This document shows, piece by piece, positions 115 to 11,207 of a stretch of DNA of 64,000 bases. This DNA is from Lepidodermella squamata (Eukaryota > Animalia > Gastrotricha), in assembly GCA_047495785.1 (NCBI GenBank), contig JBLDXI010000020.1, forward strand, positions 1,550,001 through 1,614,000, read 5' to 3'. A program made the position numbers and the translations under genes. Within the stretch, counting starts at the first letter, position 1, and each line of letters opens with the position of its first letter. The notes under the pieces are model-generated. The model did no database searches, was not told the DNA's origin, and saw only the letters and a program-made list of their open reading frames with translations.

Positions 115-1409
115 ATGCCGCCGAAAGCAACTGGCAAGAAGACCAAGAGTCCACCAATTCTCAGCCAAGAATTTCTCATCAAGAATCATGGCGACATTGC
201 TTCCTGCTCTGTCATAATTCTATTGATTGCCTTGATGTTCCAAGCGACTCAACCATTCGCTGCCAAATTCATCTCGCTACATCACAATGTCACTATTGAA
301 GGTTAGCAATTTGCCCTCTAGCCACCGGACTGAATGAAAATTCCAAACTTTTTATTCAGGAATGGAGCATGTTCATTTTTATACAACTGGCCCGATCGAT
401 TTACTGGCAGTCGTCTTCTACATGTTGCTGGCTATCGTAATGCATGCATTTGTGCAGGAGTTCATCCTTGATGTAAGGCTATTTTCTGTTGTTATAATAT
501 TTTAGCATCATGAATGTTCATTAACAGAAACTCAATCGGAAGATGCATCTTTCGAAAATCAAGCACAGCAAGTTCAATGAATCTGGACAACTCTTGACAT
601 TCTATTTGCTATCGATTGCCTGGGCTTTCGCCATCATGCATGAAGTGAGTTTTTGATGCCTTAGAATTTGTATAACTGAATTTCTTTTGGATTATCAGGA
701 TGACTACTTTGGAAATTTCCACAAGCTTTGGGCGGCATACCCTCACAATGCGCTGAGCTGGCGTACAAAGATGTTCATGATTACGCAGATGAGCTACTGG
801 CTCCATTGGTATCCTGAACTCTACCTCCAGAAAGTCAAGAAGGAGGAGGTTCCTGATCGTCTGACTTACATTTCCCTTTACTTGGCAGCTGTTGTAGGAG
901 CGTATTTCTTGAGCTTCTCTCCTCTGGCTGTTGTTTTCTTGTTTGTTCATTACATCGGTGAGGCTATCTTCCAAGCCACCCGCCTGGTTTATTTCGCCGA
1001 GCGAAATTACCTGGCTCGCTATGGATTCATGGTTTGGAACGTCGTTTTCCCTCTTGTCCGCTTATCTATTGCCGGTTTATCAATTTTCATCTTCTTTTAT
1101 CGCTTGGAGGCGACCGTTCTTCCGAAAGTCGATTTGGCGACTGGAAACTTCAACACGCGTAGTGTCCGCTTGGTTTGCTTGGCATTCCTCGAACTTGTTC
1201 AGATGTGGCTCTTGTATCGCTTCGTTACCTTCTTCCTGCGCCACCGTCGCGAGCGATCAAGCCGCAGCCGCTCGGCCAAGAACAAGACGGTTAAGGCTGC
1301 TCAAGCCGCCGTTGCTGACAAAGGCAGCGAGCCGGAATCATCTGGTGAAATGAGCTCCCCTGTTGCGGCCAACGGTGACGCCGGCGTTTCGACTCGCCGT
1401 CGCAAGTAA
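115..1409 (+). CDS. TRAM1: Translocating chain-associated membrane protein (TRAM1/TRAM-LAG1-CLN8 family); exons 115-301, 360-472, 528-644, 699-1409
   Basis: N-terminal [19 protein letters not shown]; spliced ..[24 protein letters not shown]..; [21 protein letters not shown]; GNFNT. Three GT-AG introns of 58, 55 and 54 nt restore one frame. Confidence 0.93.
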
Positions 1410-2400: not shown

Positions 2401-3530
2401 ATGAGTCTTTTTGGCTTTGGACAATCGGCGGAAATCGCCATCGTTTTGGATGGCGAGGAGACGAGGCGGACAGCCGAAATTCGCACTGAAGCCGGGCGCA
2501 AAGAACGGCATTTATTGTACTTTGACGGTGAAACTGTGTCCGGCAAAGTCATTGTAAGCTTGAAAAAATCGGGAGTCAAAATGGAACATCAAGGCATTCG
2601 AATCGAATTCGTCGGCGCCATCGGTATTTTTTCCTGCTTAGATTATTAAGTGAAGTAACGCATGTTGATTTAGAATTGTATAACGATCGGTCCAACCAGC
2701 ATGAATTCGTTTCTCTGGTGAAAGAACTCGCTCGCGCTGGAGATATGACTCAAAGCACAACTTTTCCGTTTGATTTCCATCAAGTCGAGAAGCCTTACGA
2801 ATCATATACTGGTAGCAATGTCCGTCTGCGATATTTCCTTCGAGTTACAATCGTTCGTCGTCTGGCTCTTGACGTGGTGAAAGAGCGAGAAATCATCGTT
2901 CACACTCTCAGCCACTATCCTGAGATGAATAGTTCGATTAGAATGGAGGTTGGAATCGAAGATTGCCTTCACATTGAATTCGAATATAACCGATCCAAGT
3001 ACCACCTTCGGGATGTGATTGTGGGTAAAATTTACTTCATCCTCGTTCGCATCAAGATCAAGTATATGGAGTTGCAAATAATCAAGCGGGAAAGCACTGG
3101 TAACGGTCCAAACGGTTACAATGAAAGCGAGCCAGTCGTCAAGTACGAAATCATGGACGGTGCTCCGGTAAAAGGCGAAACCATTCCGATTCGCATGTTC
3201 CTTTCCGGCTACGACTTGACCCCAACAATGCGAGACATTAACAAGAAATTTTCCGTTCGTTATTATCTCAATTTGGTTCTAATTGACGAGGAAGATCGAA
3301 GATATTTCAAGCAACAAGAAGTTTCGCTCTATCGCAAAGCTGATATCCAGCGAAAGCAGATCGCTTCGGCAGGAATCGTTTCGCCCCATTTCACCGTTCA
3401 TACGCAGGCAACAGGCGACCAGAACTCCGAAAAGCAGTTTTCAGCCGCCGGTGACAAGAACGGGTCGTCGAATGACGGCGAGAACGGCAGTGCCTACAGG
3501 AGAGATTCGATTGACGAGGGCGAGGAATGA
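2401..3530 (+). CDS. VPS26: Retromer subunit VPS26; exons 2401-2623, 2674-3530
   Basis: MSLFGFGQSAEI, LYFDGETVSGKV, EKPYESYTGSNVRLRYFLRVT, IRMEVGIEDCLHIEFEY, DEEDRRYFKQQE; 50-nt GT-AG intron. Confidence 0.97.
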
Positions 3531-4203: not shown

Positions 4204-4940
4204 ATTCCGCATATCTCGAAAATATAACCGAGGTATTTTCCGATTGGGCCGAGAGATTTTTAGGGGTGAATCCAAGAATTAGTAAGGATAAATGTCAAGG
4301 AGGAGCAGCTTATTAACGATCAATCGAGAATATGTTTGTCCATATGAATTTTAGCCGATGAACGAAGCTCGAACGAATGAGGATACTTCGGCTTCCTTTT
4401 CCAGACTTATTCACGGTCGGGCTTTAAAAAGGCTGAAAAGGTGACAAAGTGCTCTCTGCTTACTGCTTACCTTAGGTATAATGCAAATTCACGAGATATT
4501 CGGAAGCTGAATTGTAATTTGTTTTAATTATTTTTAGGTAACATGCCCATAGGTGAATTTTGCCATATTTCTCTATAGAAAATGATTAGGGCGGACTTTA
4601 TTCATGCTATTTTCAAGGGTGTTGCCCTTTCACACCCCAAAAAGTGGCTCAGGATTGTGGGCATGTGGGAATAGGATTATTTTATGGCTTTCCATGGAGA
4701 AACATAATTTCTCTATGGCTAGCTATAGAATAATCCTTTATTGAATCCTCCTAATTAAATAATCCTCCATTATGATGTGCATGACTTAGGAATTTTGCGA
4801 ATCCCCCCAAGTTTTATAACGGAGCAATTGTGTATAACCGGAAATTTCCGCAGTCGGAATTTATTTCAAATTATATCAACGTGATCCTGGATCAGGATAT
4901 TGTAAAAGTTTCATAGAAAGTTAACATATTTTTAGTCAGC

Positions 4941-7900
4941 TCAAAACAGGAATTCTCGTTCTCCAAAGCTACCGGGTCCGCCCTTTCGAATCATAAGTTT
5001 GCGAATCTGATCGAATGACATGAGGAACAGAGCAAACGGTAGGGTTGATAGCCACCAGAGACCCCAAACTGGAGCCATGAAGAATCTATGAAAAAATATA
5101 TAAAAAAGCCATACGTTTTTCAGGATAAACTTACGCATCACTGATTCCTGGGCAATAACATAACAAAACGGCTATTCCAGTTTCAAAAATGATGCCGCCC
5201 AATAAGTAGTGATTTCTCCCTGGAGGTGAAATAATTATATCGCGATTAATGTTAAAACATTGTGAGAGCGTCAACTTACATCCTTGCTCGAACATTGACT
5301 GACGGCGAGTTTTACAGCACACAACGCAAATCCACTGCATGACGACCATGGATAGGAAATACACCCCATACAAAGTATGTTCAAGATCTTTCCGCTGAGT
5401 GTAAGTCCACTCCTGCCCATACGAATCCTCCAGATTATTCAGAGCTGAGAAAAAAGACAAGTTTAAACATTTCTGAAGAGAGATTACAAATAATAAATAT
5501 ATTTTACCTATGGTATCCCATCGTGGCGCGAGACCTACAGAGAACACGTCTTTCGCCAAAAAGCCACTTTCTGAGAGAGCAACCGTGTAGGCCAGCATAC
5601 AACCAGCCATTTCAATGATTCCATTTTGTCCATAGGCGACCGACATCATCCGCTGAGTGATCATAGAATCTTTCTTCGAGTTGCGCGGATTTCTCTTCAT
5701 TATATCAGATTCAGCTTGCTCATAGGCTAGCATAACGGCTGGGGCCATATCTGTGACTAGACAAATTGTCAACATGGCAATAGTACCCATCGGGAGCGGA
5801 ATCTCAAGAACGACATAGGCCAAAGCTGCAGCAATTTCAGGAGGATTAGCCACCAAAATGTAGCACACGGTTTTCTTCAAGTTATCGAACAACAACCGTC
5901 CCTCCTGGATAGCGAAAACGATCGTGGCGAAATTGTCGTCTAGCAAAATCATATCAGCAGCTTGTTTCGAGACATCCGAGCCGGTGATGCCCATAGCAAT
6001 GCCGATATCAGCGCGTTTCAGGGCCGGGGAATCATTGACACCATCGCCGGTAACGCCGACAATATTGCCAGCTCGTTGGAACCCTTCGACAATCAGCAAC
6101 TTTTGTTGAGGCGAAGTGCGGGCAAAGACGATTTCCTTGTAATTCGCGATGACGTTATCGAGTTGAGACGACGTCATGTCCTTCAACTTGTCGCCTGGAA
6201 CAACAATCGCATTAGGTTTCTGTGGCGAGTTTCGAGGAAGATCTTCGGCGGTTTTAGCGTCAGGTGAAAAGATGTTGACCATCTTAGCAATTGCCTTAGC
6301 CGTCACAGGGTGATCCCCAGTTACCATGACTACACGAATACCGGCCTCGCGGCATTTTCGAACGGCATCTGGTACAGCAGGTCTCGGCGGGTCCATCAGC
6401 GCGATCAAACCAACAAAGCGAAGACCTTTCAAAGGGAAATTCGCCTCGGGCTCGGTTGTGAAATTGTAATTTGGCGGGTATTCGTTGCCTGGGAGTAGCA
6501 AATCCGCGAATCCCAAAACGCGCTCACCCATACCGCCCAGCTCGGCATAAACCGCGTTGAACTGAGCTTTCACTTCTTCAGTAATAGGAATCGTCCCTCC
6601 ATTAGCCTCGCCAACATACATGGTATCACACATGTCGATGACCCGTTCCGGGGCGCCTTTCATAACAACCAAGAATCGGCCATCCTCCTGCCGTTTATGC
6701 ACTGAAGCTTGAAATTTCGTGGCGCTGCTGAATGGAACCTCAGCCTTTTTCGGCCATTTCGCTCGAAATTGTTCGACCGAACCAAGGGATCGTTCCGAAA
6801 ATTTGAGGAGACCAGATTCAGACCCATCGCCGATGCATTCCCGCTCCATTATATCGATGTTATCCTGGTTTTGTTTAAAGACAGCTCGGCTGCAAAGAGC
6901 GGCGACTCGCATCAAGGGCGACCAGCCAGTCGCCTCGCCATCTACCTTGTACTTGGCCGCCACGACTTGTTCCTTCGAAATATCAGCAATGTGGATTTCT
7001 TGATTGAACCACAAATGCGCGACTGTCATTTTGTTCTGGGTCAAAGTTCCAGTTTTATCCGAGCAGATGACTGAGGTAGCGCCCAGAGTTTCGACAGCCT
7101 CGAGGTTCTTGACCAGGGCGTTTCGTTTCGCCATGCGTTTCGCGGCCAGGGTGAGGCAAAGGGCGATTTCTATCAAAACACCCTCGGGTACGTTGCCGAT
7201 GATGATACCAATGACGAAAACAACGGCGCCGATCCAATTGCTCGCATCTTTAGCTAAGATCCAGATCAAGAAAATGATTCCAAGGCTGAATGCAAACACT
7301 GAATTTAAAGAAAAATTATTATAATATGAATTTTAATGAAAAATTAAATTTAACATACAGCAAATAACGTAGACGAACAGTTCCAGCTCACGGGCGAGAG
7401 GTGTCTTCTTCTGCTTGATGCCAGTTGTCAAACGAGCAATTCTACCCATCACAGTATTGTCACCAGTTGTAACAACAATCGCAGTTGCCGTTCCTTCCAG
7501 GGCATAAGTGGAGAAAAAAATCATGTTCTTAGTTTCCAGCGGGTTGTCGTTGGTGAACTCAGCCGATCGCATTTGGGCCTCCGATTCGCCAGTCAAACAC
7601 GAATTATCGACTTTGAAGTTCGAACACGAGACAATGCGACAGTCGGCTGGGATTTTATCACCCCCTTTCAGTACCACTATGTCACCTGGAACCAACTCCT
7701 CGACGGGGACTTGCTTCTCAGACCCAGATCGGATGACCGTCGAGAAGGTTGGCATGAATTTCTTGAAGGATTCCATGATTTTCGAAGACTTGGCCTCTGA
7801 AACAGTTAATTTGGTGAACATAAATTTCTATTTTTTTAATATACCTTGAATGTAGGAAAAAGTGGCGGTAATCAAAACGATGCCAGCCAGGACACAGCCA

Positions 7901-8592
7901 AGGTACAAATTGTCACCCGGTACATCGTCACTCTGCGAATACTGCATTCCGTAGGCGATGAAGCAAAGAATCGAACCAGCCCACAGCATCAAGCCAAAAC
8001 CACCGACGAGTTGTTTCGCAAATTTGAACCATTCCGGCTCGACAGGCGGCGGGCGGATTCTATTCAAGCCACACGAGTCGAGTCGTTCTTGAACTTCGCT
8101 GTCTTTCAAGCCGAATCTCAAGCTTGTACCGAGTCGCGATTCCAGCTGTTTGATCTTGATCTTGTGCGCATCCATGTTGGCTTCCTGTTTCAATTCGTCC
8201 ATTTCATTCTCAAAATTCTTGCCACATTGCAACAGACTGCCGCAGCATGAGTCGAGGAAAGATTGCCAGCATGTACGGGTGGTTTGTCGCGGCGTCATTA
8301 CCGAATTTCTCCTAGCCATTCGAATGCTTTCAGCTCGAGCTCGGGATTCAGGGTCCTGGCTGCCGATCGACGATAGACGGGACGAGATTCGAGCCGAGAG
8401 ACTTGACGCAATTTTACCACCCTCGTTTTTCGGATGATCGAATTCACCGGTGAATGAAACGCCGATTTTTTGCCGCTTTTCGCTAGTCGCAGCAATATTC
8501 CTTCCGTCCTCGTAAACAGCAGGCAAGACAGATCGAACGAACTGATTTTGCCCGTTATCGGGGGCCTCATAATTTTCTGATTGCGAAGACAT
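4941..8592 (-). CDS. P-type IIC (Na+/K+-ATPase alpha-like) ATPase with divergent ion-binding residues; 6 exons, short introns near 7844-7797, 7357-7299, 5508-5446, 5280-5220, 5134-5086
   Basis: [55 protein letters not shown] beta-binding motif; ATG at 8592. Confidence 0.95.
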
Positions 8593-9191
8593 TTCCAAGT
8601 TTTGTTTTCTCAAAAGTTTTTGCGAAAAAAATTGAAAATCTTTGTCATATCGGTAATTTCGGGCGCAAATTTATAGTGGCCCGTGGCAGAGGGCGAGTTG
8701 CGAATTGCGTCATCAGCCAAGCTGCCATATTACAGCGAAGGTCAAATGCACGTGAACACTGCGTCATTTTTTCGGCCTAAGCTCACGGCTAAAAATAGCT
8801 TGGACAAAAAGTTCTCATGCTTAATTTGGTTCACCCATGAGTTTTTTATGGTCACACTTGAGTAAAAGAATGACGTAATCACGTTTTTTGTTAAACTTAC
8901 CTGCTATACCAAGTATAACATACATGGAGGGGGCAGAAGAGCCTGAACTTGTAAACCCATTGACGTTATTATAGCCAAAATGTTCGGCAAGAGATCGCCG
9001 TCAATTTGCGTCATAATTTTTTGTGTGTCTAAAAATAGCCGCTCGAAAACTCTCACTCCAATAATTGCCCTTGCGTCATTATAACAGCTGCATTATTATA
9101 AGGTATCCAGCCCAGTTAATTTTGAAGTATTTATTTAATAGGTATAACTTTCCATCTCAAAAATAATATAAATTTTTTGAAATTAGTTCTG

Positions 9192-10861
9192 TCAATTCCT
9201 TGGTACCAGTTTGACCCAGACGCCTTCTAATGGGGTGATGGTGAATCCGGCCATCAATTTAAGGTTCTCGACAGTTTTCGGTGACTTTTCAATGCGGTAC
9301 TTTCTCAGCAAATTAGCCAGGGTCAATTTCATCTCCAGCATGCCGAATCTCATGCCGAGGCATATCCTTGGCCCGTAGCCGAATGGCATAAAAGCCGCCT
9401 CGTGTCTCGTCGCTTTAGTTGGGTAGTTGTCGGAAAATCGCTCAGGATGAAATTTTTCCACATCAACCGGGCCCCATTGTTCCTCGTCACGGTGAATAGT
9501 CCAGACATCGGCGATAATATTCAAACCCTTCGGAACATTAAGTCCATTAACAACCGAGTCCTCCATAGCCAAACGCGTGACGACTAAAGGCGCTACTGGG
9601 TAAATTCTCAGAGTTTCGTGCAAAACCGCCTCGAGATACGGCATTGAAGAAACAGATTCGTAATCGGCTGGTTTCGATTTGTCGGGCAACTTTTCATCGA
9701 TTTCGGCTATCAGCTTTTGTTGGACATCAGGGTTGTTGGCCAGAAAATGGGACGCAAAGGCCAAGGCATTGCTCGAGGTCTAAAAAATAATGTCTTTAAT
9801 TGAACAAAATTTCAGTCGATTTTCAAAAAGTTACCTCATAACCGGCTATCATGAATATCATACTTTGACCGATAATTTCGTCTATGGTCAAACCTCGGTG
9901 GCCATTCAGCTGGTTAGGATCGACCACAGATTCCTCAACTTCAAGCATCATCTGCAGCAAATCAGCTCTCTTTTTATTATTCGCCTTCCGATCTTTGATA
10001 ACTCGCTGCATCAACTCGTCCAGAATGTCCCGAGAGATGAAGAGTCCAGTTCGGAAAACTTTGGATTTAACGGTTTCGATGAGCTCGAGCAACTTTTTCA
10101 GCTCTGGCAACACCATAGCGACCTGCATTGACAGAGGAGCCTTGAATAAATTCTCAAACATTTCACTGATCGAGTTGTAAATCGGGTTATTTCGACCACG
10201 CGTTTTCGCGCTTTCCAACTCGACGCCGAATGCTGTTTCGGAAATTGTGTCCAACGTTAGGAATTTGTAGCACTCGAAAATGTTGAACTCTTGCTGGTTC
10301 GCGGCGGATTCTTCGATCAAGGCCATGAACTCGCTTTGACATTTTTCCATCAAAGGCATCAAAGATTTAAGCTTGCCAGCTGAGAACATCGGGTTTGCGA
10401 TTGTCCGCAGTCTCTTCCAACGATCCCCACGAGCTATCAAAACGTTAATAGGCCGGCTGGAAAAAATTGAAAAAATTAAAATTTTCAATATATTTTTTTT
10501 TAATTTTAATTTACGAAGGTGCGTCGGGGTCGTCCTGAAGCGGGAAGATTTTATGCCCATGGAAATTCGAGAATTGTTTGACGTAAACTTGGGAGATGAA
10601 ATCTAGATCTGTTGTCACCAACGTTGGCGTAGATCCTTCGTAGTAGCCGTACAACCGGCCATATTTCTTCGTCCAGTTAGGAATCGCCAGATGGCGCTTT
10701 GATTCATCAGCGAAATCCGCTAAATTTCCTATTAGCCAATGAGGCTTCGGCCCAGGTATGCCTTCGCGTTTAAAATGATTGAAAGCGAAAAATTTGCGGT
10801 AAATGTAAAACGAAATGACGGTTGTAGCCGCTGCAACAGCAATAAGTGAAAGAATTTCCAT
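9192..10861 (-). CDS. Cytochrome P450, CYP3 clan (CYP3A/thromboxane synthase-like); 3 exons
   Basis: N-terminal anchor + IPGPKP, WKRLR, AGYE|TSS I-helix, ETLR, PERF, heme motif FGYGPRICLG; two short GT-AG introns. Confidence 0.95.
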
Positions 10862-11207
10862 GGTCAATTAGTTCATAAAGCTAGTTCAACAGCGAGACAC
10901 TGAGCTTATAAACGCGTCCTTTGTCCACTATCAGGAGGGCATAAATACTTTATTTATTTTGATATGATAGTACTATCACTTGTGCTTTAATAAATTCATC
11001 CTAATGATCGTTATCACCGTTATAAACGTATTCCAAGCGCTTTTTCCAGCCTTTTTCCACAATAAACAGCTGTGCAACTGTCCGTTCTTTCCCGAATCAG
11101 AGAATGATGATTTAGTCAGGTATCATTTATTTGCTTAGAAAATGATAAAATAAGAAATGACAGTAATAATATAGAATAACGTCAAATCTTTTTCATTTTA
11201 GCAGTTT

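Follow-up and report, generated by a model that had tools for sequence, protein, structure and literature searches.

A transcribed gastrotrich Na,K-ATPase alpha paralog with two ion-pocket aspartates replaced by cysteine, and the gene family to which it belongs

In the canonical Na,K-ATPase alpha subunit, D804 belongs to cation sites I and II, S775 acts as a shared ligand in K+ site I and in Na+ sites I and III, and the Na+-specific site III depends on D926, T774 and the C-terminus (PMC5233988, PMC10812997). The mutation D804N reduces the binding of K+ more strongly than that of Na+, and Na+ binding is compromised by D926N (PMC5026471 and work cited there). How the pocket determines ion choice and the 3:2 stoichiometry is a matter of active study, for which natural variants have been the most informative cases, one such being Artemia alpha2KK (PDB 8K1L), an alpha paralog found beside canonical copies, whose pocket changes (Lys at N324 and N776, with all carboxylates kept) lower the stoichiometry to a measured 2Na:1K (PMC10756188). 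The H+,K+-ATPases (ATP4A, ATP12A) also belong to P2C, have a beta subunit and show a remodelled pocket, their hallmark being Lys at 775, with Glu at 804 in ATP4A, and C. elegans has the alpha-like paralogs CATP-1 to CATP-4 beside its canonical pump eat-6 (PMC11631496). Here we describe an alpha-type (P2C) gene of the gastrotrich Lepidodermella squamata, located in a 64,000-nucleotide window (positions 1,550,001 to 1,614,000 of contig JBLDXI010000020.1, assembly GCA_047495785.1), in which, unlike in alpha2KK, both of these Asn are kept and two Asp are replaced by Cys. An earlier reading of this DNA (the original prediction) had singled out these replacements.

The gene, called L001 below, lies on the minus strand (8592-4941) and comprises six exons that encode a product of 1123 amino acids (aa) with no internal stop, in a model spliced by hand from the list of open reading frames and the sequence. 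The segment to which it was originally assigned, 4941-5890, covers only the part from the fifth transmembrane helix (M5) to the C-terminus. Pfam identified Cation_ATPase_N, E1-E2_ATPase, Cation_ATPase, Hydrolase and Cation_ATPase_C domains in the product, the full P-type cation pump architecture, and the catalytic and beta-binding motifs were all found in the model: TGES (aa 318), DKTGT (aa 476), KGAPE (aa 609), MVTGDHP/DPPR (aa 698-726), GDGVND (aa 813) and, in the loop between M7 and M8 (L7/8), the beta-subunit contact motif SYGQ (aa 1000). In phmmer alignments against all PDB chains, run exon by exon, exon 3 matched pig alpha-1 (3WGU) with E = 6e-213, with pig, human, bovine and shark alpha subunits all at ~1e-212, against ~1e-187 to 1e-196 for H,K-ATPases and 1e-74 to 2e-86 for Ca2+-ATPases; for the C-terminal exon, the best PDB matches included alpha2KK (8K1L). 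Overall identity to canonical pumps is 52-54% (~52% over exon 3). L001 thus has the same P2C descent, domain order, catalytic motifs and SYGQ as canonical alpha subunits (pig and human alpha-1, 3WGU and 7E1Z, and the canonical copies L006 and L008 of the same genome). Together with the beta-subunit genes and the placement of L001 among animal alpha subunits (both below), these features mark it as a P2C pump, with pairing to a beta subunit predicted.

The ion pocket departs strongly from this background. Because the alignments to solved pumps contain no gaps through M5, M6, M8 and the C-terminus, nor near the M4 sites, the numbering of the sites (that of Na,K-ATPase alpha-1) is secure, and it places Cys rather than an acidic residue at both 804 and 926. 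Seven of the 19 residues that line the canonical pocket, as listed in a published Na+-bound model (PMC5233988), are replaced (V322I, A323G, T772I, T774V, S775A, D804C and D926C), and the canonical C-terminal ETYY is replaced by EFLF, so that the terminal YY reads LF. The ungapped alignments bear out D804C, D926C, T774V, S775A and the C-terminal change as originally listed, and add T772I, I777P, A323G and G806V, which had been missed. E327, N776, E779, D808, Q923 and the E954 equivalent are shared with canonical subunits, and T807 is also kept; the acidic groups of the pocket fall from five to three (E327, E779 and D808). The roles that the original prediction had given to these positions (D804 at sites I and II; T774, D926 and the terminal YY at site III) agree with published mutagenesis and modelling (PMC5026471, PMC5233988, PMC10812997). 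Its comparison with H,K-ATPases stood in part: S775K is present in deer ATP4A (P0034), which nonetheless keeps Asp at 926, where Asn had been expected, and has D804E. L001 differs from these pumps in having Ala at 775, and trees do not place it with ATP4A.

The full ligand set for 3Na+/2K+ transport (E327, T774, S775, N776, E779, D804, D808, Q923, D926 and YY) is therefore incomplete in L001. An isoform with ordinary exchange of 3 Na+ for 2 K+ would fit the 52-54% identity and the intact catalytic and beta-binding motifs, yet L001 lacks two of the five pocket carboxylates, both M5 hydroxyl ligands and the C-terminal tyrosines, a single change at D804, D926 or S775 is enough to alter or abolish Na+ or K+ binding (PMC5026471, PMC10812997), and separate canonical copies are kept in the genome. 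We regard such an isoform as very improbable: judged by its residues, L001 almost certainly would not carry out 3Na:2K exchange.

RNA data bear out the transcription of the gene, its modelled splicing and its polyadenylation. RNA contigs from a public run of 2015 (X1), identical or nearly so to the window, span 4845 to ~8495, leaving the 5' end and the start codon beyond the RNA cover. They precisely skip all five predicted introns, with joints at 7796/7845, 7298/7359, 5444/5508, 5218/5279 and 5085/5135, and one of them carries at 4845 a loose end of 20 nt of poly(T) on the plus strand, which corresponds to the poly(A) of the mRNA. An X1 contig that spans both Cys codons (TGT at 804, TGC at 926) shows no difference at either. 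Since the codons are unchanged in contigs that carry the spliced, polyadenylated mRNA, they are not assembly errors, a check that had been proposed at the outset. A second run (X2, from 2024 and labelled as another organism) contains a copy a few percent diverged that covers 4872-8683 of the window, in which the differences listed fall in 37 codons, codon 908, that of D804C, not being among them; as 34 of these 37 are synonymous, the copy belongs to a strain, haplotype or close relative on which the same constraint acts.

L001 is not alone. A six-frame search of the 121-Mb assembly, with pocket residues read from tblastn alignments, identified at least 11 P2C loci. L006 and L008 are canonical tandem copies (TLTSNIPE, CIDLGTD, QWTDL and ETYY). 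L010 (L010/L013, G000:C19:2178946-2180794) is near-canonical, with all five carboxylates and the ending EFYF, and already has A770C and a Cys-rich N-terminal motif also found in L001; it looks like an intermediate stage of the radiation. Five copies, L001 and L002-L005, which are 65-86% identical over exon 3, have Cys at both 804 and 926 (Cys-Cys copies hereafter): G323, V774, A775, C804, V806 and C926 are present in all five, with EFLF-type ends, and L003 adds E779Q. The tandem pair L007 and L009 (G000:C55:558343-569587) has N776S, E779C and D804P, L007 also having D926G (position 926 of L009 was not recovered in the alignment). All eight derived copies have A770C, in M5 and one helical turn from T774, and the catalytic motifs are also kept in the paralogs. 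One genome thus holds a graded series, all intact and with L001 transcribed, from canonical and near-canonical copies to five with D804C and D926C and two with E779C and D804P. Besides these, L011 (G000:C54:4256181-4257911) is a distant P2C copy with D926N and altered motifs (DKSGT, TGEAD), on a long branch of uncertain placement. The genome also has at least seven beta-subunit loci (PF00287 above cut-off). This beta family is likewise expanded (L026-L037; G000:C14:505516-511791, C13, C24, C12 and C144), three of the loci being clustered on contig 14.

Comparison of the paralogs showed strong purifying selection on the gene. Synonymous sites are saturated in all pairs except the closest, L001/L002, for which the nonsynonymous divergence (dN) is 0.14, the synonymous divergence (dS) ~2.7 and dN/dS ~0.05, far from the neutral value of 1 that had been named as evidence against a functional gene. 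Both Cys codons switch between TGT and TGC among the paralogs, so that the amino acid was held while the codon drifted. Asp to Cys takes two base changes at each site, and the Gly (GGT) of L007 at 926 is a possible intermediate toward Cys. When the five Cys-Cys copies were compared with 18 canonical sequences, 43 fixed replacements were found at 516 columns invariant in the latter, with 23 in the 91 columns of M4, M5, M6 and M8 versus 16 in 358 extramembrane columns (odds ratio 7.2, P = 2e-8). Moreover, conservation among the five copies is highest in M5 (72% of positions invariant versus 47% overall). This signature reads as that of a pocket rebuilt and then frozen, rather than of decay, and the fixation of the two cysteines in five old paralogs likewise speaks for a functional role and against decay. 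Nothing was found in favour of an artefact, or of a pseudogene in decay, whose Cys codons arose from assembly error or relaxed constraint; this reading is hardly credible, and we reject it given the codons confirmed in contigs of two other runs, the spliced polyadenylated transcript, the open frame, the low dN/dS, the 34 synonymous differences out of 37 in the X2 copy and the presence of the same residues in four further paralogs.

In trees built with FastTree (122 rows) and in IQ-TREE quick searches, L001 groups with animal alpha subunits. The five Cys-Cys copies form one clade (support 100), which L010 and L007/L009 join in a clade of eight genes (support 100), and no public sequence falls inside the latter in either type of tree. 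The position of the eight-gene clade relative to canonical bilaterian pumps is unstable because its branches are long. A constrained tree that joins the eight derived copies to the two canonical copies of the same animal surpasses the free quick search by 19 log-likelihood units and is not rejected by the approximately unbiased (AU) test (p-AU 0.81). The ten alpha genes therefore appear to be a lineage-specific radiation from the animal's own canonical sodium-pump gene, and on these trees the two cysteines have a single origin, in the Cys-Cys clade. The canonical copies L006 and L008 fall outside a well-supported group of molluscs, annelids, flatworms and brachiopods, and the identity of L006 to public proteins reaches 76% at most, without favouring any phylum. 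Orthology of the derived genes to the C. elegans CATP proteins is unsupported, as no public representative joins the eight-gene clade, CATP rows not being labelled among the representatives. Beyond what the original prediction had considered, then, L001 is one member of a five-gene subfamily within an apparently lineage-specific ten-gene radiation, and it has a convergent counterpart in freshwater mussels.

Searches of public sequences with a word index, queried with the stop-free frame 5137-7296 (720 aa) and with the M5-M7 region alone, and, exhaustively, with a profile against 1.84 billion cluster representatives, returned no relative closer than ~55% identity, and none of the 460 proteins retrieved has Cys at both 804 and 926. 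Two unionid mussel paralogs, P0383 (Potamilus streckersoni) and P0440 (Sinanodonta woodiana), nevertheless have S775A, T799A, I800M and D804C in common with the Cys-Cys clade, at columns otherwise invariant in canonical subunits. Their sister in trees is the canonical gene of the mussels themselves (support 100), which implies a separate origin within molluscs, and columns also changed in the Cys-Cys clade account for 6 of their 22 fixed changes (P = 0.007). Unlike L001, these paralogs, annotated only as Na/K-ATPase alpha, keep D926, T774, A323, G806 and a near-normal C-terminus. The mussels thus offer an independent, partial replay, and the convergence argues that a pocket with S775A and D804C would be a selected design. 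Cys at 804 combined with Asn at 926 occurs in distant P2C-like proteins of the glomeromycete fungus Racocetra fulgida (P0255), the sponge Ephydatia muelleri (P0149) and the ichthyosporean Chromosphaera perkinsii (P0232), which differ from L001 in that Asn, in their identity of 34-46% and in having another M5 (e.g. LPAG). Three JGI metagenome proteins (P0185, P0251 and P0224) likewise have Cys at 804 and Asn at 926. Literature searches found no papers on D804C or D926C pumps or on unionid alpha paralogs and nothing relevant on P2C paralog phylogeny. What is new here is the picture of the family, the single origin of the Cys-Cys copies, the radiation from the animal's own gene, the enrichment of replacements in the pocket helices and the convergence with mussels.

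Catalytic activity, ion identity and stoichiometry we infer from these observations on sequence, splicing, expression, conservation and selection. The substitutions would abolish Na+ site III, strip site I of its side-chain ligands and leave E327, E779, D808 and N776, which roughly make up site II. Cycling between E1P and E2P with a beta subunit would be retained, with fewer ions moved per ATP. In the likeliest mode, one small cation (Na+ or H+) bound at the site-II-like position would trigger phosphorylation; in the canonical pump, Na+ at site II alone suffices for phosphorylation by ATP when sites I and III are blocked (PMC10812997). Counter-transport of K+ would be weak or absent, because K+ binding suffers more than Na+ binding when residue 804 is neutral. 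Neutral residues at D804 are said, in work of Koenderink et al. from 2000, to give a K+-independent Na+-ATPase. On balance we lean towards an active pump with reduced or altered stoichiometry and weak or absent K+ counter-transport as a reasonably likely description of L001. If it is correct, a low-stoichiometry or K+-independent pump would bear on how steep ion gradients are handled in small animals of dilute or extreme waters. The family could also reveal whether a site-II-like pocket suffices for a working pump, whether such a pump becomes independent of K+ once D804 is neutralised and whether its substrate is altered by pocket thiols.

Several points weigh against such a pump. Substitutions of D804 abolish normal transport in canonical pumps, and activity would need compensating changes. 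With E779Q, L003 would be left with two acidic groups, a poorer fit to a cation pump. The RNA support consists of contigs, which give no level, tissue or 5' end. Finally, Cys is an odd choice if only the removal of charge was needed, as Asn, Ser and Ala are each one base away.

Another reading is a role independent of pumping, similar to that proposed for C. elegans CATP-1: L001 would be a regulator, scaffold or receptor, and its ATP turnover might be uncoupled. In canonical pumps, substitutions of D804 and D926 cripple transport (PMC5026471 and references therein), site-disrupted mutants are still phosphorylated with the membrane part uncoupled (PMC10812997), and CATP-1 (cited in PMC11631496) provides a precedent. 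All catalytic motifs are nevertheless kept in five paralogs despite saturated synonymous divergence, the rewired pocket is their most conserved part, with the same replacements fixed in every copy and no drift, E327, N776, D808 and Q923 are retained, and the four identical mussel substitutions point to a selected pocket chemistry. By analogy with CATP-1 such a role may be entertained, but we consider it unlikely.

The unusual choice of Cys hints at a thiol-specific role and is the chief reason to keep a further reading, that of a pump for thiophilic cations, in which a soft metal (Zn2+, Cd2+, Cu+ or similar) would have Cys770, Cys804, Cys926 and the carboxylates still present as its ligands. 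Cys was acquired at two former carboxylate positions through two-base changes each and kept in five paralogs, the sister pair L007/L009 has Cys at E779, and A770C is common to all eight derived copies. Moreover, the N-terminus of L001 is ~105 aa longer than that of canonical pumps and contains the Cys-rich motif, which is absent from these pumps and conserved in L001-L004, L010 and L007 of the eight-gene derived clade. This motif may serve for palmitoylation or for metal binding; in P1B pumps, metals are bound by di-Cys motifs and by termini rich in Cys (PMC10654040). That the N-terminal di-cysteine motif acts as a metal sensor or delivery site, as this reading would have it, seems quite improbable to us. 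D804 (sites I and II) and D926 (site III) belong to different sites of the Na+-bound structure (PMC5233988), M4 reads NVPEG and thus keeps PEG, without the CPx motif that P1B heavy-metal ATPases have in the equivalent helix, L010 combines the same N-terminal motif and A770C with a canonical pocket, and the mussel convergents have D804C only. We also know of no P2C metal pump. A soft-metal pump is, then, quite a poor prospect on the residues present, although it would, if real, be the first heavy- or trace-metal ATPase derived from a sodium pump in an animal.

Table 1. Features of L001 in the window, with positions on the forward strand. Residue numbers of substitutions are those of Na,K-ATPase alpha-1; aa positions refer to the spliced model.
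Feature	Position	Strand	Details
Transcribed gene	4845..8592	-	Inferred start codon (8592-8590) to poly(A) addition site near 4845
Exon 1	7845..8592	-	N-terminal extension, Cation_ATPase_N, M1, M2; Pfam PF00690 E = 2.4e-13
Cys-rich N-terminal motif	8221..8271	-	C-W-Q and 14 further residues, after a conserved RRNS site; aa 108-124
Exon 2	7359..7796	-	Actuator domain, TGES at 7593-7582; Pfam PF00122 E = 5.8e-34
Exon 3	5508..7298	-	M3, M4, P and N domains, M5, M6, M7; phmmer, Pfam PF13246, PF00702, PF00689
Exon 3 motifs	7059-7045; 6048-6031	-	DKTGT; GDGVND
M4 segment	7180..7200	-	VANVPEG to IGNVPEG (V322I, A323G; E327 kept)
M5 segment	5836..5862	-	YTLTSNIPE to YILVANPPE (T772I, T774V at 5853-5851, S775A at 5850-5848, I777P; Y771, N776, E779 kept)
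M6 segment	5749..5775	-	ILCIDLGTD to MLTICLVTD (D804C, TGT at 5763-5761; G806V; D808 kept)
Exon 4	5280..5444	-	L7/8 loop with SYGQ (5424-5413), M8; phmmer E = 1e-16, ungapped over 54 aa
M8 segment	5323..5337	-	QWADL to QWICV (D926C, TGC at 5328-5326)
Exon 5	5135..5219	-	M9; E954 equivalent kept
Exon 6	4941..5085	-	M10 and C-terminus EREFLF (4958-4944), stop codon 4943-4941
AATAAA poly(A) signal	4860..4865	-	~15 nt upstream of the poly(A) site at 4845

The five introns are short (48, 60, 63, 60 and 49 bp) and all GT-AG. Introns 3 (5445-5507, 63 nt) and 4 (5220-5279, 60 nt) are in frame and stop-free, because of which a plain scan for open reading frames merges exons 3-5 into a 722-aa frame with two spurious inserts. 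As read by eye from the translations of open reading frames, the neighbouring genes encode a TLC/TRAM-LAG1-type membrane protein (115-1409, plus strand) and a VPS26-like retromer subunit (2401-3530, plus strand) on one side of L001, and a cytochrome P450-like protein (9192-10867, minus strand) on the other.

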